Under the pieces are notes generated by a model. That model did no database searches. It saw only the letters and a program-made list of their open reading frames with translations, and was not told the origin of the DNA. Positions 3,734-31,201 of a DNA stretch of 33,415 bases are shown one piece after another; position 1 is the first letter of the stretch, and the number at the start of each line of letters is the position of its first letter. Origin of the DNA: Macrostomum lignano (lineage: Eukaryota); assembly GCA_002269645.1 (NCBI GenBank), contig NIVC01000961.1, positions 1-33,415 on the forward strand, given 5' to 3'. The position numbers and the translations under genes were made by a program.

Positions 3734-5885
3734 ATGCTGCGCCGGCAGAACCGACTCAGGCGTGAGTTCGTCTACAAGAAGAGCATTGAACAGCGGGACC
3801 AGCAGATTGCCGAGAGGAAACAGAAGCTGCGAGAGACTCTGGCGGCTGGTGGCAGCTCCCAGCTTCCTGACGCCATGAAGCGGCAGGCCCTGCGCCTGCA
3901 TCGGTGAGTTAATGACTCAATTTTGTAATTTAAATACATTCCCGTATTTGGCTTATCAACTGAACTTGAACACCGTCACCAATCTGCTGCACACTCGCTA
4001 AACACACCGTCACCAATCTGCTGCACACTCGCTAAACACACCGTCACCAATCTGCTGCACACTCGCTAAACACACCGTCACCAATCTGCTGCACACTCGC
4101 TAAACACACCGTCACCAATCTGCTGCACACTCGCTAAACACACCGTCACCAATCTGCTGCACACTCGCTAAACACACCGTCACCAATCTGCTGCACACTC
4201 GCTAAACACACCGTCACCAATCTGCTGCACACTCGCTAAACACACCGTCACCAATCTGCTGCCACTCGCTAAACACACCGTCACCAATCTGCTGCACACT
4301 CGCTAAACACACCGTCACCAATCTGCTGCACACTCGCTAAACACACCGTCACCAATCTGCTGCACACTCGCTAAACACACCGTCACCAATCTGCTGCCAC
4401 TCGCTAAACACACCGTCACCAATTTGCAGCCACCTGGACTGGGACGGAGCAGGCGGCGAAGACGCGGACCCGGACCTGGAGCAGAGCAGCCAAGATGACG
4501 AGTACCGCTGGGCCGGCGTAGAAGACCCCAAGCTGGTGCTGACAACGTCGCGCGATCCCAGCTCCAAGTTGAAGCAGTTCGCCAAAGAGCTGCGCTTCCT
4601 ATTCCCAAACTGTCAGCGAGTCAATCGGGGCAATTATCAAACTGCCGATCTGGTCAAAGCCTGCAAAGCCAACGCTGTCACGGATTTGCTGTTGGTTAGC
4701 GAGACACGCGGCGTCCCAGACGGTCTGATTGTGTCCCATCTACCGTTCGGTAAGCGCAAGTCTTGTGCTTCATTTTCCTATTTAAGACGATCCCGATCCC
4801 GGCCCAGCCCAAAAAAGGTCCCAAGATCACTTGCATCGCCCCAGACTCGTAAGTAAAATAGCAGAAAAGTAGTGACTCTCAAGATGTTAAAACGAGATGT
4901 CACAGTACAAAGAGTCGTCTAAGGACCTTTTTAAAGCGTTTTACTGTCGGAGACTCTGAAACGACTCTGGGGCCGTAGAGTCGCATCTTCGGCGTTTTAG
5001 TGGCACTCTTCCGTCGCTAAAAAGTTGCAGAAAAAGCGCTTTAGCGTCACTTTAGAATCGCTTGCACGTCACTTCTGAGACGCTCTGGACGCGTTTCAGT
5101 CAGAGTTACAGCCTACTCAGTGTAGCCTACTGAGTTACGAGTAGTAGAAAGTTAGGCGCCAACATATCGTTTCTTGGACAATTCTTTTGCGGCTCTTACG
5201 ATTTTACAACTTGCGTGACGTGATTGTGACGCAACAGTCGCCTCTCCGCCGCATTAAGCACGTTTGAGTCGTTAAAAAGTCACAAGAGTCGCACAAAAGT
5301 CCATAGACTGATGGTTAGACTTTTTAACAATTCTTGTCCCGATATGGTTTGGGATCCAATATCATTGAGTTCCATTGTTTCCCCGACTGTTAAGTTTTTT
5401 GAGCCAGTGATAATTGAAAAATGCAACAATTCATGCTCTGATCTGTGTTGCCCAATTGCACAGGCCCCACAGCGTTCTTCTCGCTGCACAATGTTCTCAT
5501 GCGTCACGACATGCCCGGGGTGGGCCACCAGCCGCAGGAGCTGCCCCAGCTGGTCATGCACGGCTTTGGCAGTAAGCTGGCCCAACGACTGGCCTCAATT
5601 CTCAAGCACCTGTTCCCGGTGCCCAAGCCCGACTCGCGCCGGGTCTGCTCTTTCACGATTGTTCAGCACGACTATGTAAGCTTCAGGCAGTACAGCTATA
5701 AGACCGTTTCTGGTCAACCTGAGCTCACTGAGCACGGTCCAAGGATGGAGCTGCAGTTGTACCGTATCGTCCAAGGACCGCTAGACGAGGTGGACACAGC
5801 TGAGACCGAGTTCGTTGCTAGGCCTTACATGAATACAGCTAAGAAGAGGCGCCTCATGGCGGCGGCTGAAGAGGCAGCTGCCTGA
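3734..5885 (+). CDS. IMP4: U3 snoRNP protein IMP4 (Brix-domain ribosome biogenesis factor), 3 exons
   Basis: Exons 3734-3903, 4430-4749 and 5464-5885 with GT-AG introns in compatible phases. The joined translation contains [77 protein letters not shown] and GPRMELQLY, collinear with IMP4. AATAAA at 5952-5957. Confidence 0.96.
3971..4423 (+). repeat. 34-bp minisatellite, 13 units plus a partial unit, in IMP4 intron 1
   Basis: Unit CACCGTCACCAATCTGCTGCACACTCGCTAAACA starts at 3971, 4005 ... 4378. Two units are 33 bp. The partial unit at 4411 runs into the acceptor TTGCAG (4424-4429). Confidence 0.98.
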
Positions 5886-6767
5886 TTTAAGACTCCCTGA
5901 TTCGCTGACATTCTTAGCTTATTGTCTTGGTTTCAATGCGCTTTTGCAGTCAATAAACGATTGTTTTTAAATAATGATGACAGCATTTTGTTTGATTGCC
6001 TTCATCTCTCTTTCTTAATTAAAATGTTCATGATACAGCCTTGTTTTTTATTATCATTTTGTGCTTTTAAGCTGTTTTTAGGGTCAGTGCGGTAGTGGCT
6101 CACCAAAGGGTTGTCAATGAGGTCATCTTGATAAGCAAACTGGATGTACTCCGTCCGGCTCCGTCCTAAACGCAGCTCCGTTCCTGCCGACATGGTCAGC
6201 TGGGCTGGCCATAGACTATAGCTAGAATCTTAATGCGCCTCTGTGCAAAGCCTTTCTAGCCGAGAAGGGAGCATTTTATACTACTCGGCTTGGACAGATC
6301 TAGCTAGGGTCGAAAAAAGCAGTTTCAAAGTGCATTTCACTTAATGCTCACTATCTAGATTATGCAGTGTGTACACTCGATATCTAGCAATAGACACTAC
6401 AGTTCACTTTAAAATCTGCAAACAGGCCTTTTTGAAATAGAACGCACTGCACTTCCTTAATACGAGTAGTGCATCATTTTATTGAAAAGTAAATCAGCTA
6501 CAACCATGAAAATTTTGCATACATCGGATTATGAGACTGGCGATGTCATCACAGAGAATGCTGAAACCGAGTCGCTGCATTCCATTGCAGATAAGTATGA
6601 CTTTTTTCACGCATTTTTCGTATGACCAGCGCTGCTGATCATGCTCGGCAGGAGCGGCTACTGTGCAGCTCATAACTTTTCTTTTACCATAGACTCCAAA
6701 AAATTACCATCAGTAAAGGTTGTTGGTCCATGGTCAGCTCTGCTGACTATCCGGCAGCTTACCACGT

Positions 6768-7717
6768 AGCATCCCATGCAGCAGTCTTGCAATCAGAAGC
6801 CAGTCACAGTCCACCACATAGCATCCCATGCAGCAGTCTTGCAATCAGAAGCCAGTCACAGTCCACCACATAGCATCCCATGCAGCAGTCTTGCAATCAG
6901 AAGCCAGTCACAGTCCACCACATAGCATCCCATGCAGCAGTCTTGCAATCAGAAGTCAGTCACAGTCCACCACATAGCATCCCATGCAGCAGTCTTGCAA
7001 TCAGAAGCCAGTCACAGTCCACCACGTAGCATCCCATGCAGCAGTCTTGCAATCAGAAGCCAGTCAGTCACAGTCCACCACGTAGCATCCCATGCAGCAG
7101 TCTTGCAATCAGAAGCCAGTCACAGTCCACCACGTAGCATCCCATGCAGCAGTCTTGCAATCAGAAGCCAGTCACAGTCCACCACGTAGCATCCCATGCA
7201 GCAGTCTTGCAATCAGAAGCCAGTCACAGTCCACCACATAGCATCCCATGCAGCAGTCTTGCAATCAGAAGACAGTCACAGTCCACCACATAGCATCCCA
7301 CGCAGCAGTCTTGCAATCGGTAGCCAGCCAGTCACAGTCCACCACAGCATCCCATGCAGCAGTCTTGCAATCGGTAGCCAGCCAGTCACAGTCCACCACA
7401 TAGCATCCCATGCAGCAGTCTTGCAATCGGTAGCCAGCCAGTCACAGTCCACCACATAGCATCCCATGCAGCAGTCTTGCAATCGGTAGCCAGCCAGTCA
7501 CAGTCCACCACATAGCATCCCATGCAGCAGTCTTGCAATCGGTAGCCAGCCAGTCACAGTCCACCACAGCATCCCATGCAGCAGTCTTGCAATCGGTAGC
7601 CAGCCAGTCACAGTCCACCACATAGCATCCCATGCAGCAGTCTTGCAATCGGTAGCCAGTCAGTCACAGTCCACCACATAGCATCCCATGCAGCAGTCTT
7701 GCAATCGGTAGCCAGTC
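6768..7717 (+). repeat. 52/56-bp minisatellite, 18 units, ending just upstream of the FMO start codon
   Basis: Unit AGCATCCCATGCAGCAGTCTTGCAATCAGAAGCCAGTCACAGTCCACCACAT in the 5' part. The 3' eight units carry CAATCGGTAGCC and are 54-56 bp. Confidence 0.98.
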
Positions 7718-7735
7718 AAAGTCTGAAACTCAAAC

Positions 7736-9808
7736 ATGCAGCAGTCGCAACAGCAGCCCAAGTCGGTTGCCATCATTGGCGCCGGAGTCTCAGGCCTGGC
7801 GGCGGCAGCCAGTGCCTTGCGCGAGGGCCTGGCGCCAACCGTGTTCGACTCGGCGCCAGGCCTAGGCGGCATGTGGGACCCCGACCTGCGGCCTTGTTGG
7901 CAGTCGATGCGAGTCAACGTGTCCAAGTTCAGCACGGTGCTGTCTGATTATCCATGGCCGCGAGAGGCGCCACTGTTCCTTAGTCAGGTGATTGTATATA
8001 TTTAATACGCCATGTATATCACGGCAGTTTAAGCAGGAGCCAAGGTGTGGTTTGAGCTTACGTCGTTGCCCAAAATGTTCCCCATTAGAGTCAAGTACAA
8101 AAAAGCGCTGTATTTTAACCAAACAGCGTACTTATTTAATAAAATGATTCACCAAATCAGTGTCTAAAAGTTCGGGGTCGGGTCGGGTTTTGGTACCGTG
8201 TTCGGGTTTGAAAAAATGTTCGGGTCGGGGTTTGGGGTTAACCGTCCCGAACACCCCTACTTTTGAGTTGGAACTAAAAAAGGTTTAGCATGGCTTTGTT
8301 TTAACCATTCTATCGCTACCTAGGCACACGTGTTTCTCCATCTCAATTCTAGAGACAATTATTTAAGTAGTTACGAGTATCGTGCTTCGATTGCGTTGTT
8401 TTGCAATCGGTTGTTTTATAACGCAATCCTGTTGGCAGTCGATGCTTGACTTACCAAGAACTCCGCTCCGAATTCCTTAGTTATTACACTTCTGACAGCA
8501 AAGTTTATGCACTTCGTATCATTACGCACTTCGCAGGCTTCGGTGCACGCGTACTTAAGAGAGTACGCCCGAACTCGAATCCCGGCCGACGTTATGCGGT
8601 TTGGAGTTCGCGTCGTCCGGGTTGAGCGCAACCCGAACGGCTCCGGCTGGTTGTTGCAGACGACAGCCGCAGGCGATGCTTCTGCAACCACCCGCCTGTT
8701 CGATTTCGTCATCGTGGCGTCGGGCTTCTTTGCCGAGCCGTCGCTGCCGGCTGGCCTGGAGCAGCGGCTTCATCAAGCTGGGGATGGCCTCGTCAAGGGC
8801 GTCCTGCACAGCAGCCAGTACCGCGGCAACTTCCAGGTGGCCAATCGTCGAGTTGTAGTTGTTGGCAGCTCGCTGAGCGCGTCTGAGATCGCCGCGGACG
8901 CGGCTCTGACAGCTAGCGAGCTGGTGCACATCGCGCCGCACGGATTCTGGGCGTTGCCGCGCATCATCGTGGCTCAAGCCAGCGACAGCTGCCCCGCTGC
9001 ACCAGATTTTGTGCCGCTTGATGTGGCGTTCTACCGGGCTGTTGAGAGGGAAACCATTGGCGAAGTCGTGAGTACAAAGCGATGAAAATTGAAAGTACAG
9101 TATACATGTAAGCATTAGACCAAGACAAACCTACTTACACTTGGTACTGAATATTAAGAAATTAGTTACCGCATAACCTGTTGTTATTCATCGTTATTAG
9201 CACGTAGTGCATCTTTTCGCGATCATTTTTCAACCTGTATAAGGGTTGGAAGTCTGAAAAGAAAACTATAGAGCTCCAGATCAGCCTGAGTACAAGAATA
9301 AGTGTAGTATTCTGACTTGGTCTAAACCAAGCATATAATGTACAATAGTTAGACAGCCAAACGTCCACGGGCGAATTTCGTAGACCCTTAAAGTCGCTTG
9401 CAAGTCACAAGGGCAAATGAAATTTGCATCTTCAGAAAATCCGCACCCCGGGGAACTGGGCCAAGATGTCGGCTTTCTTCGAGTCCGTCTGCGGTGACCG
9501 GCGTCAGCTGTGCTGCGGGTCCGTCACTGCCGACTCGCCCCAGTGGATTACCATCTCGGATCTGTACCACCAGCTGCTGGCCGCCGGCAAGATTCGACTC
9601 GTCTTCGGCCGAGTCGCTAGCCTGAGCTCTGACCGCCTGCGGCTGTTGAACTCCAGCGAGCCAATCGAGCTCGGGCCCGATGATGTCGTCATCCTGTGCA
9701 GCGGCTACCGGCCTCGACTGGACTTTTTGGCGCCTGACGTCCTGGCCGAGCTGCTACAGGCCAACCAAGGCCAAGGTGACTAACTGACTAACTAGCTACT
9801 GTAACTAT

Positions 9809-10298: not shown

Positions 10299-11054
10299 GT
10301 GAGCGAGACAGTGGGGCAGCATAGGGTTGATTCGGACTCGAGTCTGAGTATAAGTGAGGCCTGTTCTGAGCAGATAAAGTGCTCCGGATTCGAACCAGAA
10401 AACACCGGGCTCGAGGTCCAGGTGTGGCCGCATTTTTGATGCCTGGGGGAAGTGAGTAACTTTCCGGAGCAACAAAATAGAGCAGAAGCTACTGGTAAAG
10501 AAAACCCAAGTGAACTTGATTCCTTAGAGTCTCGAAATAAACGAATTTTGGAAGGTTCTCGCATTTTACTTGCCTGTAAAGGTGAAGACGACTCAGGCAA
10601 CGAGAAGCATTTGCGGTTGCTATCTAACTTCATTAACGGAAGCTCGGCCACATTACTTTGGAGTTCGTGCGCAGGTTCGCTTTCACAAGCTCGGAATGTC
10701 ACATTGTCGAAGAGACTAACTTCATAAGATCTAAAACCAAAAAATTAATAAACTTGAAAGCGATTAGCCATGAAAATTTCTACTATTGTTTCACACTGGC
10801 CCTACAAACCTGATTTTCATTCGATTTATCAAATTTAGTGAGTCATAAATTAATTTATTTCGCCAAAAACCGCTCCCTGAGCCCATTTGGGCGCACAGAC
10901 TTGATGAGAAACAGAGTTTCACAAAAAAGTAGAGGCCAAAAAGTTTTCGACGATTGGATTGCTTGTGCAACGCCTTGAGATTTTTCTTAAGACTCAAAGC
11001 GAAATTGGCGTTGCGTAACAATTGCCTCCTCCCTGGCTGCAGGCTGAGCGTCCA

Positions 11055-13602: not shown

Positions 13603-15698
13603 TCACGCAGCCTCACTTGAAGGGCTGCTCAGTCCATTGCGGTTCAGTCTACGAAGGAATTGCTGCCTGCGAGCTGCCAGTTGCCGTAGCCGCCTGTTGT
13701 GCACTCGAATTCGGCACCGGATTGCCGTGGCCCGCTGAGCGAGGCGTCGGCGCTTCGCCGCGATGGCGCGGATTCGACTGACCAGATTGTCGCGTTGAAT
13801 ACGCAAACTGGCGTTGGTAGCGTTGACTCGGGCGCCTCGCTTTATGGCTTTTGATGAGGGCACCTTTGGAAAATGGATAGTTAATCATTTTCGAAAAATG
13901 AAAACTCCGACTTGTAAGCTCCTTATTGACAAGCGAATTCTGTATTGCCAAAGTTCAGCTAGCTAATGCTCAGTGCAACTCGGAAGGCTCCCTCTTTGCA
14001 ACACGTACCGTAAACAAAAAATTAAAAGTATTAGAACCAAAACTGTTGACGCATTTTTTCGACTAAAAATGGTCATCGTCAGAGCAAACCTTCTACTAAA
14101 TAGCATAATATGCTACGAGTATGTCTAGATACGTTTTTGGTTTTCTTGGGTGAAAATCGCGCCATTTCGTCCTGATAGTGGTCGAAATGCATTGATAATG
14201 AGGTGAGCAGTCTGTTTGGTCGGGAACTTTACTTCGGCTACTATTCAGGATCTTGCTTCGACATAAACTTAAAAGATGAGGGACAGAAGCTATCGGTTTG
14301 CAACATTTTAACGACCTCACGCACCTGTTTCTGTTTGGGTGCTTTGGTAAAAACTATGAAGCTTCCCAAAGTCCTCCTCTGTCCTGTCTCCGTTGCGTCA
14401 ATTAGCCGTTCAAGTTGTCGACGTCTTACGCGGAGTCGGAACAGCCTACGCCGCAAACGAAACTGCCGATGCCGGATGTAAATCTTGCGGGTCTTAAGTA
14501 TGTCTATTTTCTTATATTCGTAGCGCAGATGCGATTCAATGTGTTTCATTCGATTGTCGATTCGGTCAGCTAATGTCATGTGGGTTTTAACCTTTGGTTT
14601 CGGAGCAATCTTTAGCAATTCTACGTGTTCACGCAGCCCAAGTCTGGACAAAAGAGTACTGTACCTTGTTACTGCCTTGTGCATTTCTTTGTCATATTTT
14701 TTCTGATTAATCAACTCATGAGTCTTCATGGCGTTGAGCCTTTTCTGCCCAATGTTTTTCTTACTCTGTCGCAGTCGCGCAAGTTTTGTCTCGATATTGG
14801 CTACTTTGCGTCGAGAAAGCAGCATAGCTCTTATAAAATGCCTGAAATCAGCCATATAGGTATAAATCCGAGTAGCAAAGCGCGTCACATCCGCTCGGCT
14901 AGTCACGTCCAGGTGCCGACGACTGGAAATCGGATCGTCTTTTATGCTAAACCTGGCGAGCCGTCGCAAGTCGTATGGCTTCCATCTCTCTATGAATTGT
15001 TCCATGGGCCAGTATCGCTCATTGCTATCTGCCAGCTGAAGACGAACCCGCTTTTTGAGCAAAGCGATTCGTCTCCGAAAAATTTGCCGCCTTTTCGACA
15101 GTCGCCTAATGCGACGGCGCAGCGCTGCCTGTTGAATAAGCAGAATGCGCTTGGACGGCTGCTGGGAAGTCCGAACCTCAGTCTTTGTGATATTGGCAGA
15201 CTTACTCTCACCCAGCTTCATGCGAGCTCTCTCTGTCTGAGCAATGCTACTATGTTTAGCCAGAGCTGCCATTCGAATTTTGAGCTGTTTCAACCGTTCG
15301 TCCACGACTTGTTCGTGTCTTTTAATTCGATTGATCCGGAATCTGAAAAGCAGGGATCGCCTCATGTCGCGCAACCACGCTCTCTCCCCTTCTCGGAAGC
15401 GTTTGTTCCACTCGGTGACGGATTGGCTTCTGATGTGTAGCTTTCTTGGCTTGATGACCCCGTTTTGCTTGCGATAGCTGCTAGCTGCTTTGGTGCCTTT
15501 CAGCTGCTTCTCCAGCATATTTCTGAGCTGCGTTATCTGTCCCAGAAGATTCCTGTTTTGCTCAGAGGCTTGAGATCGGGCTTTCCTGAATTCCCGAATC
15601 AGCACTCGAAACTGATTGTTTGCCTGCACTCCATTCGACTCTGGAAAGCAGTGGTGCGGATGGCCATCTAGGATTAATTTCGTATTTTTGTGCCTCAT
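13603..15698 (-). CDS. Unknown ~544-aa highly basic (Arg/Lys-rich) predicted coiled-coil protein, nested antisense in FMO intron 4
   Basis: Open frame of about 1.5 kb (14241-15755) with first ATG at 15698. A phase-0 donor CAG|GTGCGT at 14325/14324 joins a phase-0 acceptor (ATTAAC...TATCCATTTTCCAAAG|) at 13864/13863, adding an 86-aa exon of the same Arg-rich character. About 127 of 504 residues of the long ORF are R or K (hand count). No recognisable family. Confidence 0.75.
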
Positions 15699-16346
15699 AT
15701 CTATACCGTCTGAAGAGTTGATTCGGGAGGTGATCAGTCTCCCGAAAACTCCCACTTCCAGACACTTAAGCCTGGGAACAAAATAAAGTGATCACTTACT
15801 TTTGCGGGCTCCTCTTCTGTGTAGTGCAGGTTCTCCGAGCTCGTTTCTTCTAATCTTCTTCTTCTCCGGAGGAATCTTCTTGAAGTCTCGAATCGGCCGA
15901 ATGAGAGCGTGACGATCAAATCAGGCGACGTCGCAGTATTTCTCGAATGCAAATCAATATAGGCCTTAAGCTCAGTAATCAATATCAACGATGCGCCCTT
16001 GTAATAAAATCAACTTTCTGTAATAATCACGAGGACCTCCAAGAGGGGCGTCTTCTTCTAGATCTAACGGAATCGGAGTCGTGTGCTCCTATCGGTTAAT
16101 CTAGGATAACCAAAATCAATCAATCGATAATCCTCTAAGGGTATCGGAATCGGTCCGCCGATCCTATCCAATCCCTTAGGAAAATGGGAGGCCTCAAATT
16201 CAATGAACTCAGTCCAAACGACTGGATAGTAGCGGCCGGCAATAAATCGCTCTCAAAATCAATAACAAAGGCTCGAGCAACGGCTCACCAATTGGTTTAT
16301 CTCTCTCTCTCAGAGATGTAGCCTCGCTTAGCTGTTCCAGCAAGCT

Positions 16347-16402
16347 CCAAGATCTTTAGAGGCTGCTCCGAGTCCCAAGATCTTTTGAGGCTGCTCCGAG
16401 TC
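16347..16402. repeat. 28-bp tandem duplication just downstream of the proximal minus-strand TATA box
   Basis: CCAAGATCTTTAGAGGCTGCTCCGAGTC (16347-16374) and CCAAGATCTTTTGAGGCTGCTCCGAGTC (16375-16402), one mismatch. Confidence 0.9.
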
Positions 16403-16430
16403 TGAGATTTTTAGCTCGGATTTTGGCTTG

Positions 16431-16438
16431 TATTTATA
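16431..16438 (-). promoter_or_regulatory. Candidate proximal TATA box (TATAAATA) of the nested gene
   Basis: TATAAATA on the minus strand. There is no ATG on that strand in the roughly 730 nt down to ATG 15698. Plausible UTR donors lie at 16288 (G|GTGAGC) and 15799 (A|GTAAGT). Confidence 0.5.
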
Positions 16439-16823
16439 GGAAACCTTCTTGAAGAACAGATTATTTTTAGTAGGTGACAGTTTAGCGCTTTGGAAATTTG
16501 ACCCCTATGGAATACATTAGGTTTGAGCGTCAATACCATATTCGGAGTTCTAAATTTAAGTGTTGCAAAAGGTGGTCATTTGTTGCTTTCGTGGTCTTTA
16601 AAAATAGAGTGTGACAATTTGCAGTTTTTACAACATTCAAGTTTTTCGCATTTTTATGTTTCTACTTACAGTAGTCTGCTTGTAATGCCTCTGGAGATCT
16701 CTACACGTCCGTATATAATCAATAGCAATTTTTTTATGAGACTGAGATGACTTAAATGGGTCCAGTCGCAGTAAAAATCGAAAAAGGATATATTGCGAAA
16801 GTTCAAGCAAGTTGAAAATTTAC

Positions 16824-16932
16824 CAGAACGTTTGCCGTGTTTAATGGCTGCTCCGCTGCAAAACTGGAAAATCTCTCCGAAAATCAGCAAGCCAGCGAAA
16901 ATCAATAGATGAGCTGCTCTAATCTGGACCAT
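16824..16932 (-). CDS. Signal-peptide-encoding exon (MVQIRAAHLLIFAGLLIFGEIFQFCSGAAIKHGKRS)
   Basis: ATG at 16932, hydrophobic core LLIFAGLLIF, small-residue cleavage region CSG/AA, then a GKR site. Phase-1 donor G|GTAAAT at 16824/16823. The downstream partner exon is uncertain. Confidence 0.55.
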
Positions 16933-17080
16933 CTCAACTCGTTTTGTTTAGCAGCTCAATACGCAAAGTAAATGTAGAGTCAATTCTTCCACTTTCTTCA
17001 GTTTTTCCACTTTTGCACACTGCTGGGAAATTAAAGCTAAAGAGTCTGAGTTTGGGCAGTTCTACTTTATTCGTTATGGC

Positions 17081-17137
17081 TATTTATACACGGCGAGGAT
17101 CGGGTGGAAGCGCAGGGGGTGTAATTCATTTCATTGG
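17081..17137 (-). promoter_or_regulatory. Candidate distal promoter: CCAAT box plus TATAAATA
   Basis: Minus-strand CCAAT at 17137-17133 and TATAAATA at 17088-17081, about 150 nt upstream of ATG 16932. Confidence 0.55.
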
Positions 17138-17462: not shown

Positions 17463-18019
17463 GCAGTCAGCCCGCCTTCAGCAGCCACCTGCTGGCCAAC
17501 GCGTACCGCCGCGGCGGCCCAGACCCCGACGTGTCGGCGGAGCTGGCCGCCGTCTGCGCCGACCCGGACGGCAGCTTAGCGGCCTCAGCCATCGCTCGGG
17601 CGCTGCACTCGACTCGCTGGCAGTTCTGTCGACGTCGCCAATCAGACGGTACGGTTACAGAGGCCGAGAAAGAGGAAGGCACGGCGGAGTTTTTCGGCTC
17701 TCTGGACGATGATCCGGGACGCGGACTGACGCTGCAGTACCGAGAAAGTCGTCCCGCTGGCCAGTGGCTCTTCCAGTTAGCATTCAAGAAGCTGCAACCA
17801 GCCAGCACGCTGAGCCTGTTGAACAAGCCGGAGGGACTGCCACTCTGTCTCCGACTGAGCAGATCGACCGAGGGCTGGCTGGCCGAGGCCTTTGGCTGGC
17901 GGTTCTGCTTCGCTTTCCGGGGAATACAGCTGGAGAGGTTCTCGCTGCTAAGGGAAGAGGCTGAGGGCTACTGCAGGCTAGCTGAGTACCAGCCAATGGT
18001 GTTACTGAGGAATATCTGA
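17463..18019 (+). CDS. Terminal exon 5 of the FMO gene, DUF6314-like C-terminal domain
   Basis: GC-rich 185-codon exon with no ATG near its 5' end. It is preceded by CTGAC, a long pyrimidine tract and AG (17461-17462). Its phase 1 matches the FMO donor at 10298. The five exons total 1965 nt, or 655 codons. AATAAA at 18134-18139. The domain assignment comes from recalled motifs only. Confidence 0.7.
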
Positions 18020-18212
18020 TGGCTAGGTTCGTGGATAGACTAAATGGACCAATAGGGTAGCATACTTTTTTGTTTTTTTGATTAGTAGCTACAGAACTTT
18101 TCCGCGATATCACTACCTTTCTTTTGATTAGTCAATAAATTAAGAATCGGTGATTGATAAATTTGTCGTTCGAAACTGCATCTTTCGCGTGTTCGGTGTG
18201 TACCCATGATTC

Positions 18213-19088
18213 TATGAGGACAAGTGAAAAAGCTAATCAGATAGTAATGTCACAAGCTTCAAGCCTCCTCCCAGATCAGGCACTTCTTCATGCACCATTG
18301 CCCTCCCTCCAGGTCGTTCGTGTGGAATGCAGGAGGCTGCGCAGCAAGCCACCTGCGCGGCAACCTTCTTGGTAGCCTCTCTGCAGTCGAGTCGGATTCC
18401 CTTGATCGCCTCCTTTAGTTTCGGAAAGAAAAAAGGCTCGTAACAAATGATGTTTGATAGATTTTGGGTTAGGAAGTCAACCATCACAACTCCCGCATAA
18501 TCCCAGAAGACTGCAGACTCTTTGACACGGAACTTCTTGCAAGGGCCCGCTGATCTGAACATCGTAGCATCCACTAATTGAATTGTACTTACATGTAGGA
18601 GTAATATCGATGCATTATCACTGCATGGTCACCAAGCGCTGGTAGAGTCTTTGGAGTCGGCGTTCACGCAGTTAGATTGTCAGACTGACGGCACATTCAG
18701 TGCGCTGAACCCGATGTTCAGGCCTCAACCGGCGCGAGAGGCCCAACGGGCTTTCAGCTTGTTCAGACCAAGAGTGTCGGTCTGAACAAGATACACAAAA
18801 GAGAGTGAGCACTTCAGAGAGATGCCCATTTGAGCAAAAATCTGGTCTATGGTCACGCGGCATTCCTGCTCAATCATGTACTGCACAGCTGCCACGGTTT
18901 TCTCTGTGCGCGGTGTTGTTAGTGTTCCAGATCATATTGAGCATCTACGAACCATCGGCCCTACTAAAGTGCCTGAATCGTTCGGTGAACTGTCGGATCT
19001 GGTAAAACCAAATGAAACCATTTGCACGTCAATACATCATATATTTTAGAGTTTCAAAAAATTATTACTTCTTTACTTCGCTCTCGTA
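18213..19088 (-). mobile_element. Decayed Tc1/mariner element (mariner-type transposase pseudogene, 3' part missing)
   Basis: Minus-strand frames give EKTVAAVQYMIEQECRVTIDQIFAQMGIS, LGLNKLKARW and KKFRVKESAVFWDYAGVVMVDFL...KLKEAIK, matching the mariner HTH, ARWVP and VFWD regions, with stops and frameshifts. Termini are tentative: TATGAGGACAAGTGAAAAG at 18213, and TACGAGAGCGAAGTAAAG read inward from 19088. Confidence 0.85.
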
Positions 19089-19602: not shown

Positions 19603-22600
19603 ATGGTGAGTTGTCTGTCTTCTTTTGAAATGATACAATCTGATGTTTTTTTTCAACTTAAGCTTAACAGTACCGTTGTAAATTATGTGGGCCAGGCCTC
19701 AGGCCAGGAATTTTGTCCCTATCTATAGTAGGCCTAGGCTATTATGATCAAGTCGTCAAGAGGTTGTTTTTGAATATGGCATTCTGGCAGCTGGCACAAC
19801 AAGCATTAAGTTTCGGCAGCAAAAAATGATCATGTTGGGGAGTAGAGATCTATGACATGTTAAGATAGGCCTAGGTCTGCAAAAAAGCTTCAGTGTAAAT
19901 TTGGGTTTTTTAAGATTTCTCTCTTCTCTCCTCCTTTATCTCTATCATCTTCTCTTGTCTCTTCCCTCTTTGTTCCTCTCTCCTCTTGTCTCTGCCCTCT
20001 TCTCCTCTTTCCTTTCTCTTGTCTTTGCTCTCTCAGTTCTCTTCTTTTATCTTTGCTCTTTACTCTCTCTTCTCTCTCCTCTCTTCTCACTCTACTTTCC
20101 TCTCTCTTAACACTTCCCTCTTCTCTCCTCTTTCCTCTCTCCTATCTACTCTTTCCTGTCTCATCTCTTCTCTCTCATCTCAAATTTATACTCCTATTTA
20201 TTATTTCTCTTCTTTTCTCTTTTCTATCAATTCTCTTGTCTTTTCTCTATTCAGCTATTCTCTTTACTTTCTCTTCTTACTCTCTCATTTGTCATGTTAT
20301 CTCTATGCCCTCTTATCTCTCTTTTCTTCCTTCCTTTACTCTTTCCCCTCTTCTCTTTTCTCTTTTTCTCTCTCCCTTTTCTCTCCTCTCTTGCTATTCT
20401 CTTCTTCCTCTCCCATTTCTTCACAATTTTCTTGTGATTTAAATTCACTATTTAAATTTAAACTTATATAATTATAAAATAAATTAAACTTAATGTGAAA
20501 ATTTCCATTGTGTGACTAATTTAGTAGGATTGTATTGCATTGAATTACTTTTTTATAAATCTTGCTTTTACAAACCATGTTGCATTGCCTTGATTTGCCA
20601 ATTGCCACCCACTATTAAACTGCTACAAAGTTTGCCTATACAGAGGGCCACACTCAGGAAGGTGTACATTATGGCGGAAAATTCCGGCGCACATCCATGA
20701 AAAATATGCGCAAAGTGGTGCACACGGCGCACAACAAAGGCTTAGCAAAAGTTTTTAGCACATAATGGTGCATAGCAAAACCTGATTAGAAAAATTTAAC
20801 TCACAATGAGTCACCTAAATGTATAATCTGCATATGCAGTGCATAAAATATGCTTTAAGATTACATTTTTCTAAGCATATCAATAAAAATTGTTGTTTCT
20901 TGGTAAGTGAAACAAATAATAAAATTCAAAATGGGATTTTAACGTAAAGTTAAAGCTATTTTTTTTGAGAATTTTCTACGTGAGCTAAAAAAAGCAAAAG
21001 TTTTGAGTTAAAAAAAGCCTACATGAGATACAAAAATTTATCCGTTTTTTAGTTTTGTTTTAATTGGACTTTTACCGAGTTTTTAGTGCTACGGCGCATT
21101 AGTTAGCGATGTATTTGTCAATAAATGAATGTACACCTCGGCGCACAAATTCATATTTTAGCTTCGTGCACAGCGCACACCAAAAATACGCTAAAATATG
21201 TTCCCGCGCACACGTGACACCTTCCTGAGTGTGGACAGAGGGCAGGGGTTAGAATTTTTCACTAAACTGTCATGGCTTAATGTAGCACATGCTATCTATA
21301 AATAAAGTTATTCTAAAACATTGTCATATTGCCATATAAAGAATTGTTAAGATATTATAACCTAGAGAAGAATTGCTAAGAAGTCTGCTTATAAGAGGTC
21401 AAATCATAGGATAAATTACTAAAATATCAAGACTAAGAGGTCAGAGGCTGTGTTGTCTTTAATTATTCAATTCTTTCTTGGCTTCCCAATATTGCATTTT
21501 GCAATTAAATTAAGTTTGAATTTACCTAGTTTATACATTTTGTCATGTCTACTATTATTAGTACATTATTTATATCTAACAAATGATAAGGTGTTTAAAA
21601 GTGAGAAAAAAGAATAGCCTTACAGTCTGATTTTATGCTAGTAGCATATATTGTTTATTGTAGCAACTATACTAACATGTATCCTACCTACCTATGGCAG
21701 CTACCAATATGCCTATAGGAAACAGCTGCTCCAATGGCTAAAACCATTGAAATATAAAGATGTAAAAAAAGAAGCCATTGTTTTGCTAAAAAAATTGAGA
21801 CAAGGTCAAAAAGCTTTCAACCCCTGTACCCTGCATTGAAAAGTGAAAAATTCATCTTAACTTCAGCCTCTACTATCCAACCGCAGCGTGGGAATCTTGT
21901 TGAAATTGCTAAAAGCATACTAGCAAACCTAAACCTATTGTAAACCTGTATTGTACTGTATTGCAAACCTATTCTACATTGGATATTAATGATGAAAGCT
22001 TTAACACTTTGCCCTACAATATCATGGGGGAACTTTTGCTACTAGATGGACTGAATTATAAAACATTTCCAATATGTACAGCACCTGTCGAATCGCAGAC
22101 TGCGCAACTCAACCAACCACTCTATGGCACCAACCGCACAACTAGGTGAACTTTACTGTTGGCCAAATTCGCTCCATGATGGACAACAAGCGGAACATCC
22201 GCAACATGTCCGTCATCGCCCACGTCGACCACGGCAAGTCGACGCTGACTGACTCGCTGCTGTCCAAGGCCGGCATCATCGCCTCGGCCAGGGCTGGCGA
22301 GACCAGGTTCACGGACACGCGAAAGGATGAGCAGGAGCGGTGCATCACCATCAAGTCGACTGCCGTGAGCATGTACTACGAGCTGAGTGAGCCTGACGTG
22401 AATTTTGTCAAGACCCTGCAGGAGGTCTCGAAGCGCAGCGACGGAACTGACGAGTGTGGCTTCCTGATCAACCTCATCGACTCGCCCGGCCACGTGGATT
22501 TCAGCTCGGAGGTAAATTGGCTTTTTCATTTTCCTTACACCTCGTTGGACCACGAAACCTTATTACTTTAACTCCTGCAGGTGACGGCCGCTCTGCGTGT

Positions 22601-25600
22601 CACCGATGGCGCCCTGGTCGTCGTGGACTGCAACTCCGGCGTGTGCGTGCAGACGGAGACGGTGCTTCGGCAGGCCATCGCCGAGCGCATCAAGCCAGTG
22701 CTGTTCATGAACAAAATGGACTGCTCGCTGCTGACGCTCAAGAAAGGCAAGGAGGATCTGTACCAGCAGTTCCAGCGAGTCGTGGAGAACATCAACGTGA
22801 TCATCGCCCAGTTCGGCGAGGAGGGCGGCCCCATGGGCAACATCTTCGTGTCGCCGGAAAAGGGCACCGTCGGCTTCGGCTCCGGCCTGCACGCTTGGGC
22901 CTTCACGCTGAAGCAGTTCGCCGAGATCTACGCCTCCAAGTTCAAGATCGAACCGGAGAAGCTGATGAAGCGACTGTGGGGCGACAACTTCTACAACACG
23001 GAGACGAGGAAGTGGGTGAAGACTCAGGAGAGCGACAAGTGCGTCCGGGGCTTCATCCAGTTCGTGCTGAACCCCATCTACCAGGCAAGTGTTGCTTCAG
23101 TACACCTTTCATATTATTGTTAATGGCTTGACAGTATGATCACTTTATACTGAACCTGATGATCTAGCTTTTCTGGCGGAGATTACTTTGTATTATTTAT
23201 TATCGAAAGTTTTCATTTTCTCGCTCCGTCTGTAAAACCTGCGCATGATGACCTTATACTGCCCCAGGCTGAGAGAAATCTTACTTAATGAGGATTCAGT
23301 CTGTCTGATTCGCAGCAGGTAGTTATTGTTAGTTTGAGCTTTGCGAATACTTTTTTATTGCATGGTTTCGGTCAGTTCTCTGGGATTGCTTCTCCGCGAT
23401 AGCGAAAATTCACTTTGTGCCATCTGCTCCACAGATGTTCGAAGTAGTGATGGACAAGCCTATCGAGGAGGGCCTGAAGCTGGCCGAAAAGCTCGACATC
23501 AAGCTGGACGCTGAGGAGCGCGAGCTGAGCGGCAAGCCGCTGCTCAAGGTGATGATGCGCAAGTGGCTCCCAGCTGGCGACACCCTGCTGCAGATGATTG
23601 CCATCCACCTGCCGTCTCCCGTGACCTCTCAGCGCTACCGCATGGAGCTGCTGTACGAGGGACCCCATGATGACGAGGCCGCCATCGGCATCAAGACATG
23701 CGATCCGAAGGCGCCGCTCATGATGTACATCTCGAAGATGGTGCCGACCTCCGATAAGGGCCGATTCTACGCCTTCGGTCGGGTGTTCTCCGGAGTTGTG
23801 AGCGCCACCAAGGTGCGAATCATGGGCCCCAACTTCGCGCCGGGCAAAAAGGATGACCTGTTTGAGAAGAGCATCCAGCGCACCATCCTCATGATGGGCC
23901 GCTACACCGAGCCTATCGAGGATGTACCTTGCGGCAACATCTGCGGTCTCGTCGGCGTCGACCAGTTCCTGGTGAAGACCGGCACCATCACCACCTACGC
24001 CGCTGCGCACAACATGCGCGTCATGAAGTTCAGCGTGTCGCCCGTCGTTCGCGTCGCCGTCGACTGCAAGAATCCGTCCGACCTGCCGAAGCTGGTCGAG
24101 GGTCTGAAGCGCCTGGCCAAGTCCGACCCCATGGTGCAGATCTACAACGAGGAGTCCGGCGAGCACATCGTTGCTGGCGCTGGCGAGCTGCACCTGGAGA
24201 TCTGTCTGAAAGATCTGGAGGAGGATCACGCCCAGATCCCGATCAAGACCGGTGATCCCGTTGTGTCTTACCGCGAGACTGTCACTAACGAGAGCAACCA
24301 GGTTAGTGGCCTAGATCTTCTGTGTAGTAGTTAGACCATTAGCTACTGACTGTCAGAATTAGCTACTGACTGTCAGCATTAGCTACTGAGTACATGAGCA
24401 TTAGCTACTGAGTACATGAGCATTAGCTACTGAGTACATGGGCATTAGCTACTGAGTACATAAGCATTAGCTACTGAGTACATGGGCATTGGCTACTGAG
24501 TACATGAGCATTGGCTACTGAGAACATAGGCATTGGCTACTGAGTACATGAGCATTGGCTACTGAGAACATAGGCATTGGCTACTGAGTACATGAGCATT
24601 GGCTACTGAGAACAAAGGCATTGGCTACTGAGTACATGAGCATTAGCTACTGAGTACATGAGCATTAGCTACTGAGTACATGAGCATTAGCTACTGAGTA
24701 CATGAGCATTAGCTACTGAGTACATGAGCATTTACTACTGAGAACCTAGGCATTGAATACTAAGTCAGCATATCAATAACCGTCGTCTCTTGACCCCTCT
24801 AGACCGTGCTGTCAAAGTCGCCCAACAAGCACAACCGGCTGTACATGAAGGCCCGCCCTCTGGACGAAGATCTCTGCAAGGACATTGACGATGGCAAGAT
24901 CGCGCCCCGCCAGGACGCGAAGGACCGCGGCCGCATCCTTGCCGACACCTACAGCTGGGACGTGACCGAGGCTCGCAAGATCTGGTGCTTCGGGCCGGAC
25001 ACCAACGGTCCCAACCTGGTTGTTGACGTCACCAAAGGTGTGCAGTACCTGGCTGAGATCAAGGACAGCGTTGTAGCCGCTTTCCAGTGGGCCACCAAGG
25101 AGGGCGTTTTGTGCGACGAGAACATGCGCGGCTGCCGCTTTGACATCTGCGACGTGACGCTGCACACCGACGCTATCCATCGCGGCGGCGGCCAGATCAT
25201 CCCGACTGCTCGGCGCTGCTTCTACGCCGCCGTGCTGACCGCGGAGCCGGCCCTGCTAGAGCCGGTGTACCTGTGCGAGATCCAGTGCCCGGAGAACGCT
25301 GTTGGCGGCATCTACGGTGTGCTGAACCGTCGGCGCGGTGTTGTGTTCTCCGAGGAGCAGGTGAGACTCTTCACACTTGTTAATGGATCTTCTCGTTAAT
25401 CTTCATATCATCTAATTCGTTGTGAGCTTGGCAAAGTGACTGGTCGTTTTTTTTGGACAATCTGAAGTTTCCTGCTTGAGCAGTTTCGAGCTTGTGAAGT
25501 ATCGAGCTTGAGCAGTTTCGAGCTTGTGAAGTATCGAGCTTGAGCAGTTTCGAGCTTTTGAAGTATCAAGCTTGAGCAGTTTCGAGCTTGTGAAGTATCG

Positions 25601-26658: not shown

Positions 26659-27413
26659 ATTCCCCTGATTATCACCCACAATTCCCCTGATTATCATTCA
26701 CGATTCCCTGATTATCACTCACAATTCCCTGATTATCACTCACATTTCCCCTGATTATCACCCACAATTCCCCTGATTATCACTCACAATTCCCTGATTA
26801 TCATTCACGATCCCCTGATTATCACCCACAATTCCCCTGATTATCACTCACAATTCCCCTGATTATCATTCACGATCCCCTGATTATCACCCACAATTCC
26901 CCTGATTATCACTCACAATTCCCTGATTATCATTCACGATCCCCTGATTATCACTCACATTTCCCCTGATTATCACCCACAATTCCCCTGATTATCACTC
27001 ACAATTCCCTGATTATCATTCACGATCCCCTGATTATCACCCACAATTCCCCTGATTATCACTCACAATTCCCCTGATTATCACTCACAATTCCCCTGAT
27101 TATCACCCACAATTCCCCTGATTATCACTCACAATTCCCCTGATTATCACCCACAATTCCACTGATTATCACTCACGATTCTCCTGATTATCACCCACAA
27201 TTCCCCTGATTATCACCCACAATTCCCCTGATTATCACTCACAATTCCCTCGATTATCATTCACGATTCCCCTGATTATCACTCACACTTCCCCTGATTA
27301 TCGCCCACAATTCCCCTGATTATCACTCACATTTCCCCTGATTATCACTCACAATTCCCCTGACTATCACTCACATTTCCCCTGATTATCACTCACAATT
27401 CCCCTGATTATCA
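26659..27413 (+). repeat. 21-23-bp minisatellite (about 35 units) downstream of EEF2
   Basis: Unit ATTCCCCTGATTATCA followed by CCCACA, CTCACA or TTCACG. Confidence 0.98.
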
Positions 27414-29567: not shown

Positions 29568-31201
29568 ATGCCGGATCTGTCAAAAATGCCGACCCAAACC
29601 TTCAACCGGGTTGCCGGAGTTTGCAAACGGAGCAGACAGCCGGGCGCGATGGAGAGGCCGGAGTCGCCAGTCGAGTTGGACAACAACCATTACAAGCAGA
29701 AGCCGAAGGCCTCCGTCTCGCGAACGAATCTGCAGCAGGTGCCCAATTTGCTCAACACCGCCGCCATAACCAGCAGAGTTTACTCGCTTAGCCTGGAGGA
29801 AAACAAGAAGATGGCCATCAAGGAAGTGATGTACGTCGATCTGTCCAGGTCAGCCAACTACACTGGCAGTCAGAAGGCCGCCTTGGCAAGGCCATTTTGG
29901 GTGCCGGCGCACATCCAGCAGGGCTGCTGGAGCGAGCAGCCGCCGTGCTACTGGAAGGTGGACATCCACTCAATGCAGGTGAGTGAGTCACTTGAGTTCC
30001 TGGCAATCTTGTGTCAGTTTGTTGTAGCCTGACTTCCTGCCCTGAGCACTATGTAGACCACAGGACCGAAAGGTACATGCATAAATTGTGGTAAGTTCTT
30101 AAAACTTCTGTGAGTCTTGGTATCGATAGTTATGAAACAGCTTTGCTCATTTATACCTTAAAAATATAAAAACTACAAAAATGACTGTACTCAGTAGCTA
30201 TCAGTCATTTAACTTCTAACGAAAAAGACACAAATATTTTTAGGAACTGGACAACGGAGCGGGCAAGCTGATTTACAACCCTCTGGCTGACTACACCCTG
30301 GAACTTATGCGGTTCTACCGGCCAGACTTGTTCGAGCACATCTTCCACTTGTTCCGGGTGAGATAAGCGACTTTTGGTTGAGCTTAGTTAATTAGTTAGT
30401 TAGTTAGTCAGTTAGTCAGTTAGTCAGTTAGTCAGTTAGTCAGTTAATCAGCTAGTCAGTTAGTCAGTTAGTCAGTTAGTCAGTTAGTCAGTTAGTCAGT
30501 CAGTCAGTTAGTCAGTTAGTCAGTTAGTCAGTTAGTCAGTCAGTCAGTTAGTCAGTTAGTCAGTCAGTCAGTCAGTTAGTCAGTTAGTCAGTTAGTCAGT
30601 TAGTCAGTTAGTCAGTTAGTCAGTTAGTCAGTTAGTCAGTTAGTCAGTCAGTCAGTTAGTCAGTTAGTCAGTCAGTCAGTCAGTTAGTCAGTTAGTCAGT
30701 TAGTCAGTTAGTCAGTTAGTCAGTCAGTCAGTTAGTCAGTTAGTCAGTTAGTCAGTCAGTCAGTCAGTTAGTCAGTTAGTCAGTCAGTCAGTTAGTCAGT
30801 TAGTCAGTTAGTCAGTTAGCAGTTAGTCAGTTAGTTAGGCTGTCGGGCTTACGTAATTTTTAGGCACATGAATTCTGCACAAAAAGAATTTTTCGAATCA
30901 CGCTACTGCTACAAAGTACATCAAGTGCAGGTCACGTGACTGCCTCTCGCATTCCTCCCCCCAGGTGTGGTGCAAACGGCTATACAACGATCGACAGGTG
31001 AGCACAATAAAGGAGATAATCCAGGCCGAGAAGCTCCCTCTGGAGGACTTCTCCGCACACTTCAGCCAGACCAGCCCCGTGGTGCCCACGCTGAGGTCGG
31101 CAACACTCGCCGACGACATTCTGCCAGAAATTGAGCACTATCTCGCCCTGCTGAGCATTCGCGCCTATTTGCTGAGGGACACCCTGATGCACATTCGCTG
31201 A
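29568..31201 (+). CDS. Unknown 253-aa protein, 3 exons, with a C-terminus resembling a degenerate hAT dimerisation domain
   Basis: GCCATG start at 29568. Exons 29568-29978, 30244-30357 and 30965-31201 are all phase 0 with strong GT-AG sites and GC-rich codons. AATAAA at 31255-31260. Confidence 0.8.
30384..30838 (+). repeat. (TTAG/TCAG)n compound microsatellite in intron 2 of the 253-aa gene
   Basis: Mostly GTTAGTCA units, which read (TGACTAAC)n on the minus strand. Confidence 0.98.

Follow-up and report, generated by a model that had tools for sequence, protein, structure and literature searches.

The DNA analyzed here is a stretch of 33,415 nucleotides (nt) from the flatworm Macrostomum lignano (the whole of contig NIVC01000961.1, assembly GCA_002269645.1, Mlig_3_7), referred to below as the window, and the subject is the gene Mlig010351, its extremely basic protein product and its two candidate 5' ends, all features of which lie on the minus strand. 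Three genes have been annotated by NCBI in the region 3603-25518: a Brix-domain gene, Mlig010351, and an EF-G/EF-2-type GTPase gene starting at 19603 on the plus strand. A long basic open reading frame (ORF) at 14241-15755 matched PAA74279.1 (hypothetical protein BOX15_Mlig010351g1) with 100% identity in the protein search. The NCBI coding sequence extends from 15518 to 13603, and its start codon (ATG, 15516-15518) opens a protein of 484 residues (MLEKQ...). The main coding exon of this basic helical protein, supported by the ORF and the protein match, occupies 14325-15640; it is followed by intron 2 (13864-14324; GTGCGT...CCAAAG, phase 0), which is supported by the gene model and by paralog comparison, and by the last coding exon including the stop codon (13603-13863, NCBI model). 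Because no gene has been called by NCBI between 15519 and 19602, the signal-peptide exon and both TATA boxes described below lie in unannotated DNA. Neither the identifier Mlig010351 nor that of its paralog, Mlig032363, was found in the searched full texts or paper supplements on this species.

Two identical TATA boxes (TATAAATA) were read directly in this unannotated DNA. The distal one (17081-17088) has a CCAAT box 45 nt upstream (17133-17137), also read directly; CCAAT is common, with 33 copies on the minus strand of the window. The proximal one (16431-16438) lies within the proposed intron 1 of the gene. An initiator-like 9-mer, CTCAGACTC, stands 30 nt after the distal box (17042-17050), and the same 9-mer is found 24 nt after the proximal box (16398-16406). 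In the window, TATAAATA is mildly enriched (four copies on both strands against 0.83 expected, a number reached in 2 of 100 shuffles), and the composite of TATAAATA followed 24-30 nt later by CTCAGACTC was found twice against 0.00 expected, the pattern having been defined after seeing the data. Four copies of the 9-mer occur on the minus strand (17050, 16406, 10348 and 911) and none on the plus strand, with approximately 0.13 expected per strand; those at 10348 and 911 are not preceded by a TATA box. The presumed distal 5' leader (16933-17047, 115 nt) is free of ATG, which is not significant alone (P=0.21). Duplication of one promoter to form the other was rejected, since aligning the two promoter regions locally gave a score inside the range of shuffled sequences.

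Downstream of the distal promoter, an ATG at 16932 opens 36 codons (MVQIRAAHLLIFAGLLIFGEIFQFCSGAAIKHGKRS), followed by one base and the donor G/GTAAAT (GT at 16823-16822; here and below the slash marks the point of splicing or cleavage). As one base stands between codon 36 and the donor, this signal-peptide exon (16824-16932, 109 nt), recognized by sequence reading and by homology to the N-terminus of the paralog, ends in phase 1. Three acceptors face it: CAACTCTTCAG (final G at 15710), TTAATCCTAG (final G at 15668) and CTGCTTTCCAG (final G at 15641). In silico splicing of the signal exon to 15709, 15667 or 15640 gave one open frame to the natural stop in each case. From the signal exon to the ORF there are only four YTNCAG sites, and the nearest two (15710 and 15641) are in frame with the signal exon. 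The acceptor TTCCAG (15641-15646, exon start 15640) provides the best join to the paralog, and the proposed intron 1 (15641-16823, 1183 nt, GT...AG, phase 1), for which the in-frame joins and collinearity with the paralog, intron-less at this point, argue, would hold the proximal promoter and a leader exon. Its size is typical for the species, as the average M. lignano intron measures 1.1-1.4 kb (PMC5730564). A first-pass annotation of the window had listed these elements, and on the minus strand its coordinates for the boxes, the exon and the acceptors hold, with the middle acceptor corrected from about 15670 to 15668; the identity of the two TATA boxes, the upstream CCAAT, the phase-1 donor and the in-frame entry of all three acceptors into the basic ORF were likewise borne out. 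A third route, from the signal exon to a GAG acceptor at 15887 (exon start 15886) and then from the leader donor to 15709, is also in frame and is unlikely, because acceptor 15887 has neither a pyrimidine tract nor the CAG consensus.

Two UniProt entries bear on the acceptors. A0A1I8HE24 is the exact translation of 15884-15800, 15709-14325 and 13863-13603, so that an independent gene model contains the 15800-to-15709 junction and splices a leader exon (donor AAAA/GTAAGT) into acceptor 15710. In this model, the consensus donor GTAAGT at 15799 follows the 3' part of the leader exon (15800-15886), and the 90-nt intron that it opens (15710-15799) ends in the acceptor CTTCAG. A0A1I8H792 represents a second copy, 98% identical, and starts with SNGVQ..., i.e., with the first complete codon after acceptor 15641. 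Existing models thus support exon starts after two of the three candidate acceptors, 15710 (A0A1I8HE24) and 15641 (A0A1I8H792). About 100 internal residues (...SRADV/KTHMT...), continuous exon within 14325-15640, are missing from A0A1I8H792, reflecting either a real deletion or a wrongly predicted intron. UniProt names A0A1I8H792 "CHAD domain-containing" and A0A1I8HE24 "WW domain-containing"; no Pfam domain was obtained at E<=1, with only LPP20 below threshold.

A full HMMER scan of 1.84 billion representative proteins detected only two relatives, A0A1I8H792 and PAA58034.1, both from M. lignano, and a profile built from the two-member alignment retrieved only PAA74279.1 and A0A1I8H792. PAA58034.1 (UniProt A0A267EAW3, 582 residues) is the product of the paralog, Mlig032363.g1. 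It aligns with Mlig010351 at E=8e-77 with 46% identity over query residues 22-478, and the identity of the protein body is 44-46% along the whole length. The paralog begins with MNIIISAVHLCWLPGLLIFGLTSEAEAVRASYSNGF..., and cleavage is predicted at MNIIISAVHLCWLPGLLIFGLTSEAEA/VRASYSNGF. The signal exon of Mlig010351 aligns with this N-terminus at the same position, with the segment GLLIFG identical and a BLASTP E value of 6e-4 (single comparison). Among 20 aligned codons the amino acid is kept at 11, and 7 of these 11 differ synonymously, which indicates selection on the signal peptide. With the join at 15640, SNG of Mlig010351 lines up with SNG of the paralog and the alignment begins at residue 1. 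Joining at 15709 adds 23 residues (DGIDMRHKNTKLILDGHPHHCFP) to which nothing in the paralog corresponds. Moreover, hydrophobicity peaks in the N-terminal segment of both proteins, and both have small residues at -3/-1 of the candidate cleavage site (SGA/A in Mlig010351 and AEA/V in the paralog).

The two genes have in common the homologous N-terminal signal peptide with its GLLIFG core, a product with an isoelectric point (pI) of 12, a 3' phase-0 intron and an upstream TATA box. In Mlig032363, however, signal and body are encoded together, residues 1-503 forming one uninterrupted exon whose ATG is preceded by TATAAAG at a distance of 88 nt, and intron 1, the internal promoter, the leader and the GKR motif are all absent. 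Its single phase-0 intron, near the 3' end, lies at essentially the same position as intron 2 of Mlig010351 (after KQKQ/KKKQQ). The homology and collinearity with the paralog support assignment of the signal exon, which is predicted to encode an endoplasmic reticulum (ER) signal, to the basic-protein gene Mlig010351 as its own unannotated exon. PAA74279.1, which starts at Met 15518, probably lacks its true 5' coding exon. At the paralog locus (L002), a long (TAG)n/(TTG)n microsatellite was observed at approximately 9380-9660, about 340 bp upstream of the paralog start codon.

The second candidate 5' end is marked by an ATG-free zone (15699-16516), which we interpret as a 5' leader from which selection has kept upstream AUGs out. 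The ATG-to-ATG gap from 16517 to 15698 measures 819 nt and is the longest on the minus strand of the window; the remaining long ATG-free gaps of the window coincide with tandem arrays (3970-4427, 26659-27413 and 30386-30835). The zone itself is unique sequence except for a 28-nt unit in two tandem copies (GACTCGGAGCAGCCTCWAAAGATCTTGG, 16347-16402) at the start of the presumed leader. An ATG-free leader reaching down to ATG 15698 had been proposed in the first-pass annotation, and the statistics agree with it: zero ATG occurred in 0 of 2000 dinucleotide-preserving shuffles (mean 10.4 for the 705 nt of 16403-15699, and up to 11.5 for lengths up to 818 nt), and within 16403-15699 ATG is the sole absent trinucleotide of the 64. 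Purging of AUG is expected of 5' untranslated regions, not of introns or outrons, and therefore the zone is read as a long leader serving ATG 15698. Its upstream edge, 79 nt before the proximal TATA box, fits initiation of transcription near 16405. When the leader was spliced to 15709 in silico, the first ATG was that at 15696-15698, which starts a predicted signal-less form (MRHKN..., 544 residues with exon 3). As read from the sequence, a splice to 15640 would leave the leader ATG-free, with an in-frame stop at 15923 and the first in-frame ATG at 15518, so that such a transcript would give exactly the NCBI protein start.

Two out-of-frame ATGs, at 15634 and 15667, lie between ATG 15698 and Met 15518 and open short ORFs ending at the same TGA near 15600; in an mRNA whose 5' end or splice junction lies at 15667 or 15640, they would precede the annotated start as upstream ORFs. 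In addition, a segment of the signal exon (16840-16855, CGGAGCAGCCATTAAA, encoding SGAAIK) has the 10-mer CGGAGCAGCC in common with 16355-16370 and 16383-16398, in both copies of the 28-nt leader repeat, possibly by chance (about 1.5 such pairs are expected in 1.8 kb). A dispersed repeat or transposon in intron 1 was also considered and rejected, as the intron resembles neither any other part of the window nor the paralog locus and has no notable terminal repeats.

The mature Mlig010351 protein has a pI of about 12, a net charge of about +106, 17.5% Arg and 8.6% Lys, and the net charge in the Mlig010351/Mlig032363 family ranges from about +106 to +127. N-x-S/T sequons are present in both proteins. 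Pfam and PDB sequence searches of the Mlig010351 protein gave nothing meaningful. Its AlphaFold model is all helical, with nine long helices, and is of low confidence (predicted local distance difference test score 63, predicted template modelling score 0.32). A GKR convertase or amidation site right after the signal had also been suggested in the first-pass annotation. This idea is not supported: the paralog has ...EAEAVRASYSNG (VRASYSNG) at that position, and the Mlig010351 protein in any case has 38 dibasic sites, spread throughout, with no repeated peptide units.

It seems probable that Mlig010351 is one gene with two alternative 5' ends that yield a secretory and a signal-less form. The architecture, consisting of a distal promoter with the signal exon, an internal promoter with the AUG-free leader, and common acceptors, is well supported; from it we infer present-day use of the distal donor, the transcription start positions, the fate of each form and any switching between them. 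The distal TATA/CCAAT promoter near 17088 would produce a short leader and the 36-codon exon (16932-16824) for the ER signal peptide, which the 1183-nt phase-1 intron would join to acceptor 15641 or, alternatively, 15710. The resulting precursor of about 561 residues would be collinear with Mlig032363 along its whole length, and after cleavage near SGA/A the extremely basic, all-helical protein would enter the secretory pathway, where, as a polycationic cargo, it may bind polyanions in granules or extracellularly. The second TATA promoter, near 16438 and inside intron 1, would give rise to the long ATG-free leader exon with its consensus donor at 15799. If the leader is joined to 15709, the first AUG would be 15698 and a 544-residue protein without a signal peptide would be made; if it is joined to 15640, translation from Met 15518 would produce the annotated 484-residue protein. 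The many Arg clusters lead one to expect a signal-less form in the nucleus or nucleolus, or associated with RNA.

Several observations weigh against this interpretation. The signal exon is present in none of the three gene models, which come from two annotation efforts (one NCBI and two UniProt), and if a transcript with this exon were dominant, an ORF caller should have picked the longer ORF; the distal form may be minor, tissue-restricted or missed by assembly. In the models, the donor feeding the acceptors is the leader donor at 15799, not the signal-exon donor at 16823. An exact look-up of five spliced models in 15 billion proteins gave no match. The distal donor GTAAAT deviates from the GT[GA]AG motif, which is enriched at M. 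lignano cis donors (122,399 of 187,627 regions) (PMC8629364). As to the proximal end, about 520 nt separate the proximal TATA box from the start of A0A1I8HE24 downstream of it (about 15885), so that this model does not tie the box to the leader. The spacing from TATA box to CTCAGACTC is unequal (30 versus 24 nt), and apart from these two elements the promoter regions are not similar. Lastly, the family offers only two members for polarizing intron 1 (gain here versus loss in the paralog). The proposal of alternative first exons, as made in the first-pass annotation, is thus upheld in part: the homology and collinearity of the signal exon with the paralog and the leader splice in A0A1I8HE24 speak for it, and the absence of the exon from the three models speaks against it.

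With regard to the origin of intron 1, a tentative and rather doubtful possibility is the insertion of approximately 1.2 kb of promoter-bearing DNA into a once-continuous exon, as still found in the paralog. Reverse-transcriptase-mediated intron loss usually has a 3' bias. The paralog keeps its 3' intron and is without a 5' intron, which is the opposite of this bias and may be taken as a weak hint for insertion. If insertion did occur, one event would have created both the phase-1 intron between signal and mature protein and the internal promoter with its AUG-free leader, and a purely secretory protein would have become one with dual destination.

Alternatively, the signal exon might be a relic, with only the internal promoter and leader now in use, signal-less proteins made from 15698 or 15518, and the distal TATA box and exon not yet decayed. 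We regard this as unlikely. The absence of the exon from all three gene models, the NCBI start at 15518 (the outcome of a leader-to-15640 transcript) and the sub-consensus donor GTAAAT would all be in line with a relic, and a 109-nt exon can survive intact by chance for a while. However, the ATG, the frame, the phase-1 GT donor, the TATA and CCAAT boxes and the ATG-free leader are all intact, and the peptide has been conserved through synonymous change since duplication. The 98%-identical copy A0A1I8H792 has the same exon start, indicating that the intron arrangement is not brand new, and yet the exon is undecayed.

It is also conceivable, though quite unlikely in our view, that the N-terminal hydrophobic segment is an uncleaved membrane anchor, in which case the distal form would be tethered to the membrane, with its body possibly cytosolic, rather than secreted. 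According to the positive-inside rule, positive charge after such a segment disfavors translocation, and in Mlig010351 the hydrophobic stretch of about 19 residues is followed by K, K and R and then by a body with a net charge of about +106, translocation of which the rule would disfavor. On the other hand, the signal peptide of the paralog is a textbook one, with an uncharged n-region, a 19-residue h-region and AEA/V followed by acidic residues; SGA/A in Mlig010351 also places small residues at -3/-1, and the N-x-S/T sequons in both proteins point in the same direction.

A further explanation, improbable in our assessment, is that 15641 and/or 15710 are spliced-leader (SL) trans-splice sites, that everything upstream, including the signal exon, is an outron or a separate cistron, and that the mature mRNA has the 35-nt SL at its 5' end and encodes only a signal-less protein. 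In M. lignano, 30-39% of genes receive a 35-nt leader ending in ATG by trans-splicing (PMC8629364, PMC5730564), and both CTTCAG (15710) and TTCCAG (15641) match the trans-splice acceptor motif YTNCAG (PMC8629364). A0A1I8H792 and the NCBI model are compatible with an mRNA starting at 15640. Trans-splicing is, however, favored where no cis donor lies upstream, and 69.9% of trans-spliced genes are conserved (PMC8629364), whereas here two cis donors lie upstream, 16823 (GTAAAT) and 15799 (consensus GTAAGT), and the family is an orphan. Moreover, the splice into 15709 in A0A1I8HE24 is a cis one, the ATG that ends the spliced leader would be out of frame at both acceptors, and the long ATG-free zone would be unexplained if it were discarded as an outron. 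Scanning the window for Rfam families, tRNAs and SL sequences gave no hits, and no SL RNA gene was found.

It is barely credible that the signal exon forms a tiny gene of its own for a secreted peptide, with no relation to the basic protein, an option that the first-pass annotation had offered: the CAG acceptor ending at 16742 would indeed give a 38-residue product (...GKRSVS-stop) with GKR after the signal, but the exon is homologous to the N-terminus of the basic-protein paralog, whose single exon encodes this segment together with the body, GKR is not conserved there, the alternative 88-residue read-through ORF was absent from the protein collection in an exact look-up, and no AATAAA or ATTAAA occurs in 16845-15326, a weak point as the gene's own 3' end likewise has no canonical signal nearby. 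Exact look-ups of the unspliced ORFs were negative as well.

Elsewhere in the window, a 192-residue ORF on the plus strand (8507-9085) gave a Pfam match to flavin-containing monooxygenase (FMO-like, E=1e-11, covering profile positions 84-224 of 532); no NCBI gene has been called there, and it is perhaps an unannotated exon or a gene fragment. Tandem arrays were found at 3970-4427 (34-mer, 13.5 copies), 6761-7723 (52-mer, 18 copies), 24375-24742 (22-mer, 17 copies), 26659-27413 (22-mer, 35 copies) and 30386-30835 (8-mer, 58 copies). The Brix and EF-G/EF-2-type genes span some of these arrays, presumably in their introns, and the first, fourth and fifth also account for the GC-skew anomalies of the window. 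Between the distal promoter and the EF-G/EF-2-type gene, a GC-richer block (17467-18574, about 0.52) contains overlapping ORFs of 109-162 residues on both strands; it is unannotated, and none of its ORFs has a Pfam match.

In terms of annotation, these results correct the gene model of PAA74279.1, and the UniProt "WW" and "CHAD domain-containing" names have no Pfam support. A Macrostomum-specific family of extremely basic helical proteins as predicted cargo of the secretory pathway would be unusual, with gland secretions, granule packing and polyanion binding as candidate roles. Should both 5' ends be in use, the locus, compact at about 1.5 kb, may serve as a model for control of protein destination by alternative promoters; transgenesis works in M. 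lignano, and each promoter fragment is directly testable. Furthermore, stretches of about 700-800 nt entirely devoid of AUG could be a useful guide to internal promoters elsewhere in the M. lignano genome.

Among known systems, SL trans-spliced genes and operons of M. lignano resemble Mlig010351 in having YTNCAG just before the coding region and gene models that begin at the acceptor (PMC8629364, PMC5730564); Mlig010351 differs from them in its upstream cis donors, in the cis-splicing into 15709 in one model and in the out-of-frame leader ATG. Neuropeptide and prohormone precursors also have a signal peptide followed a few residues later by GKR. In Mlig010351, by contrast, GKR is not conserved in the paralog, and the predicted precursor is a helical protein of 561 residues with dibasic sites throughout and no repeated peptide units. 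Secreted and intracellular isoforms are produced from alternative promoters or first exons in gelsolin (plasma versus cytoplasmic), IL1RN (secreted versus intracellular IL-1Ra) and yeast SUC2 invertase. As in the architecture proposed for Mlig010351, the upstream first exon provides only the signal peptide, the first AUG from the downstream start lies after the signal, and the body is common to both forms. Unlike in these systems, the Mlig010351 isoforms are predictions from sequence and gene models, the protein is an orphan, and the internal leader, entirely AUG-free, has the unusual length of about 600-700 nt. Isoforms with and without a signal peptide from alternative first exons are thus already well known, and Mlig010351 would be a further case, in an orphan flatworm family.

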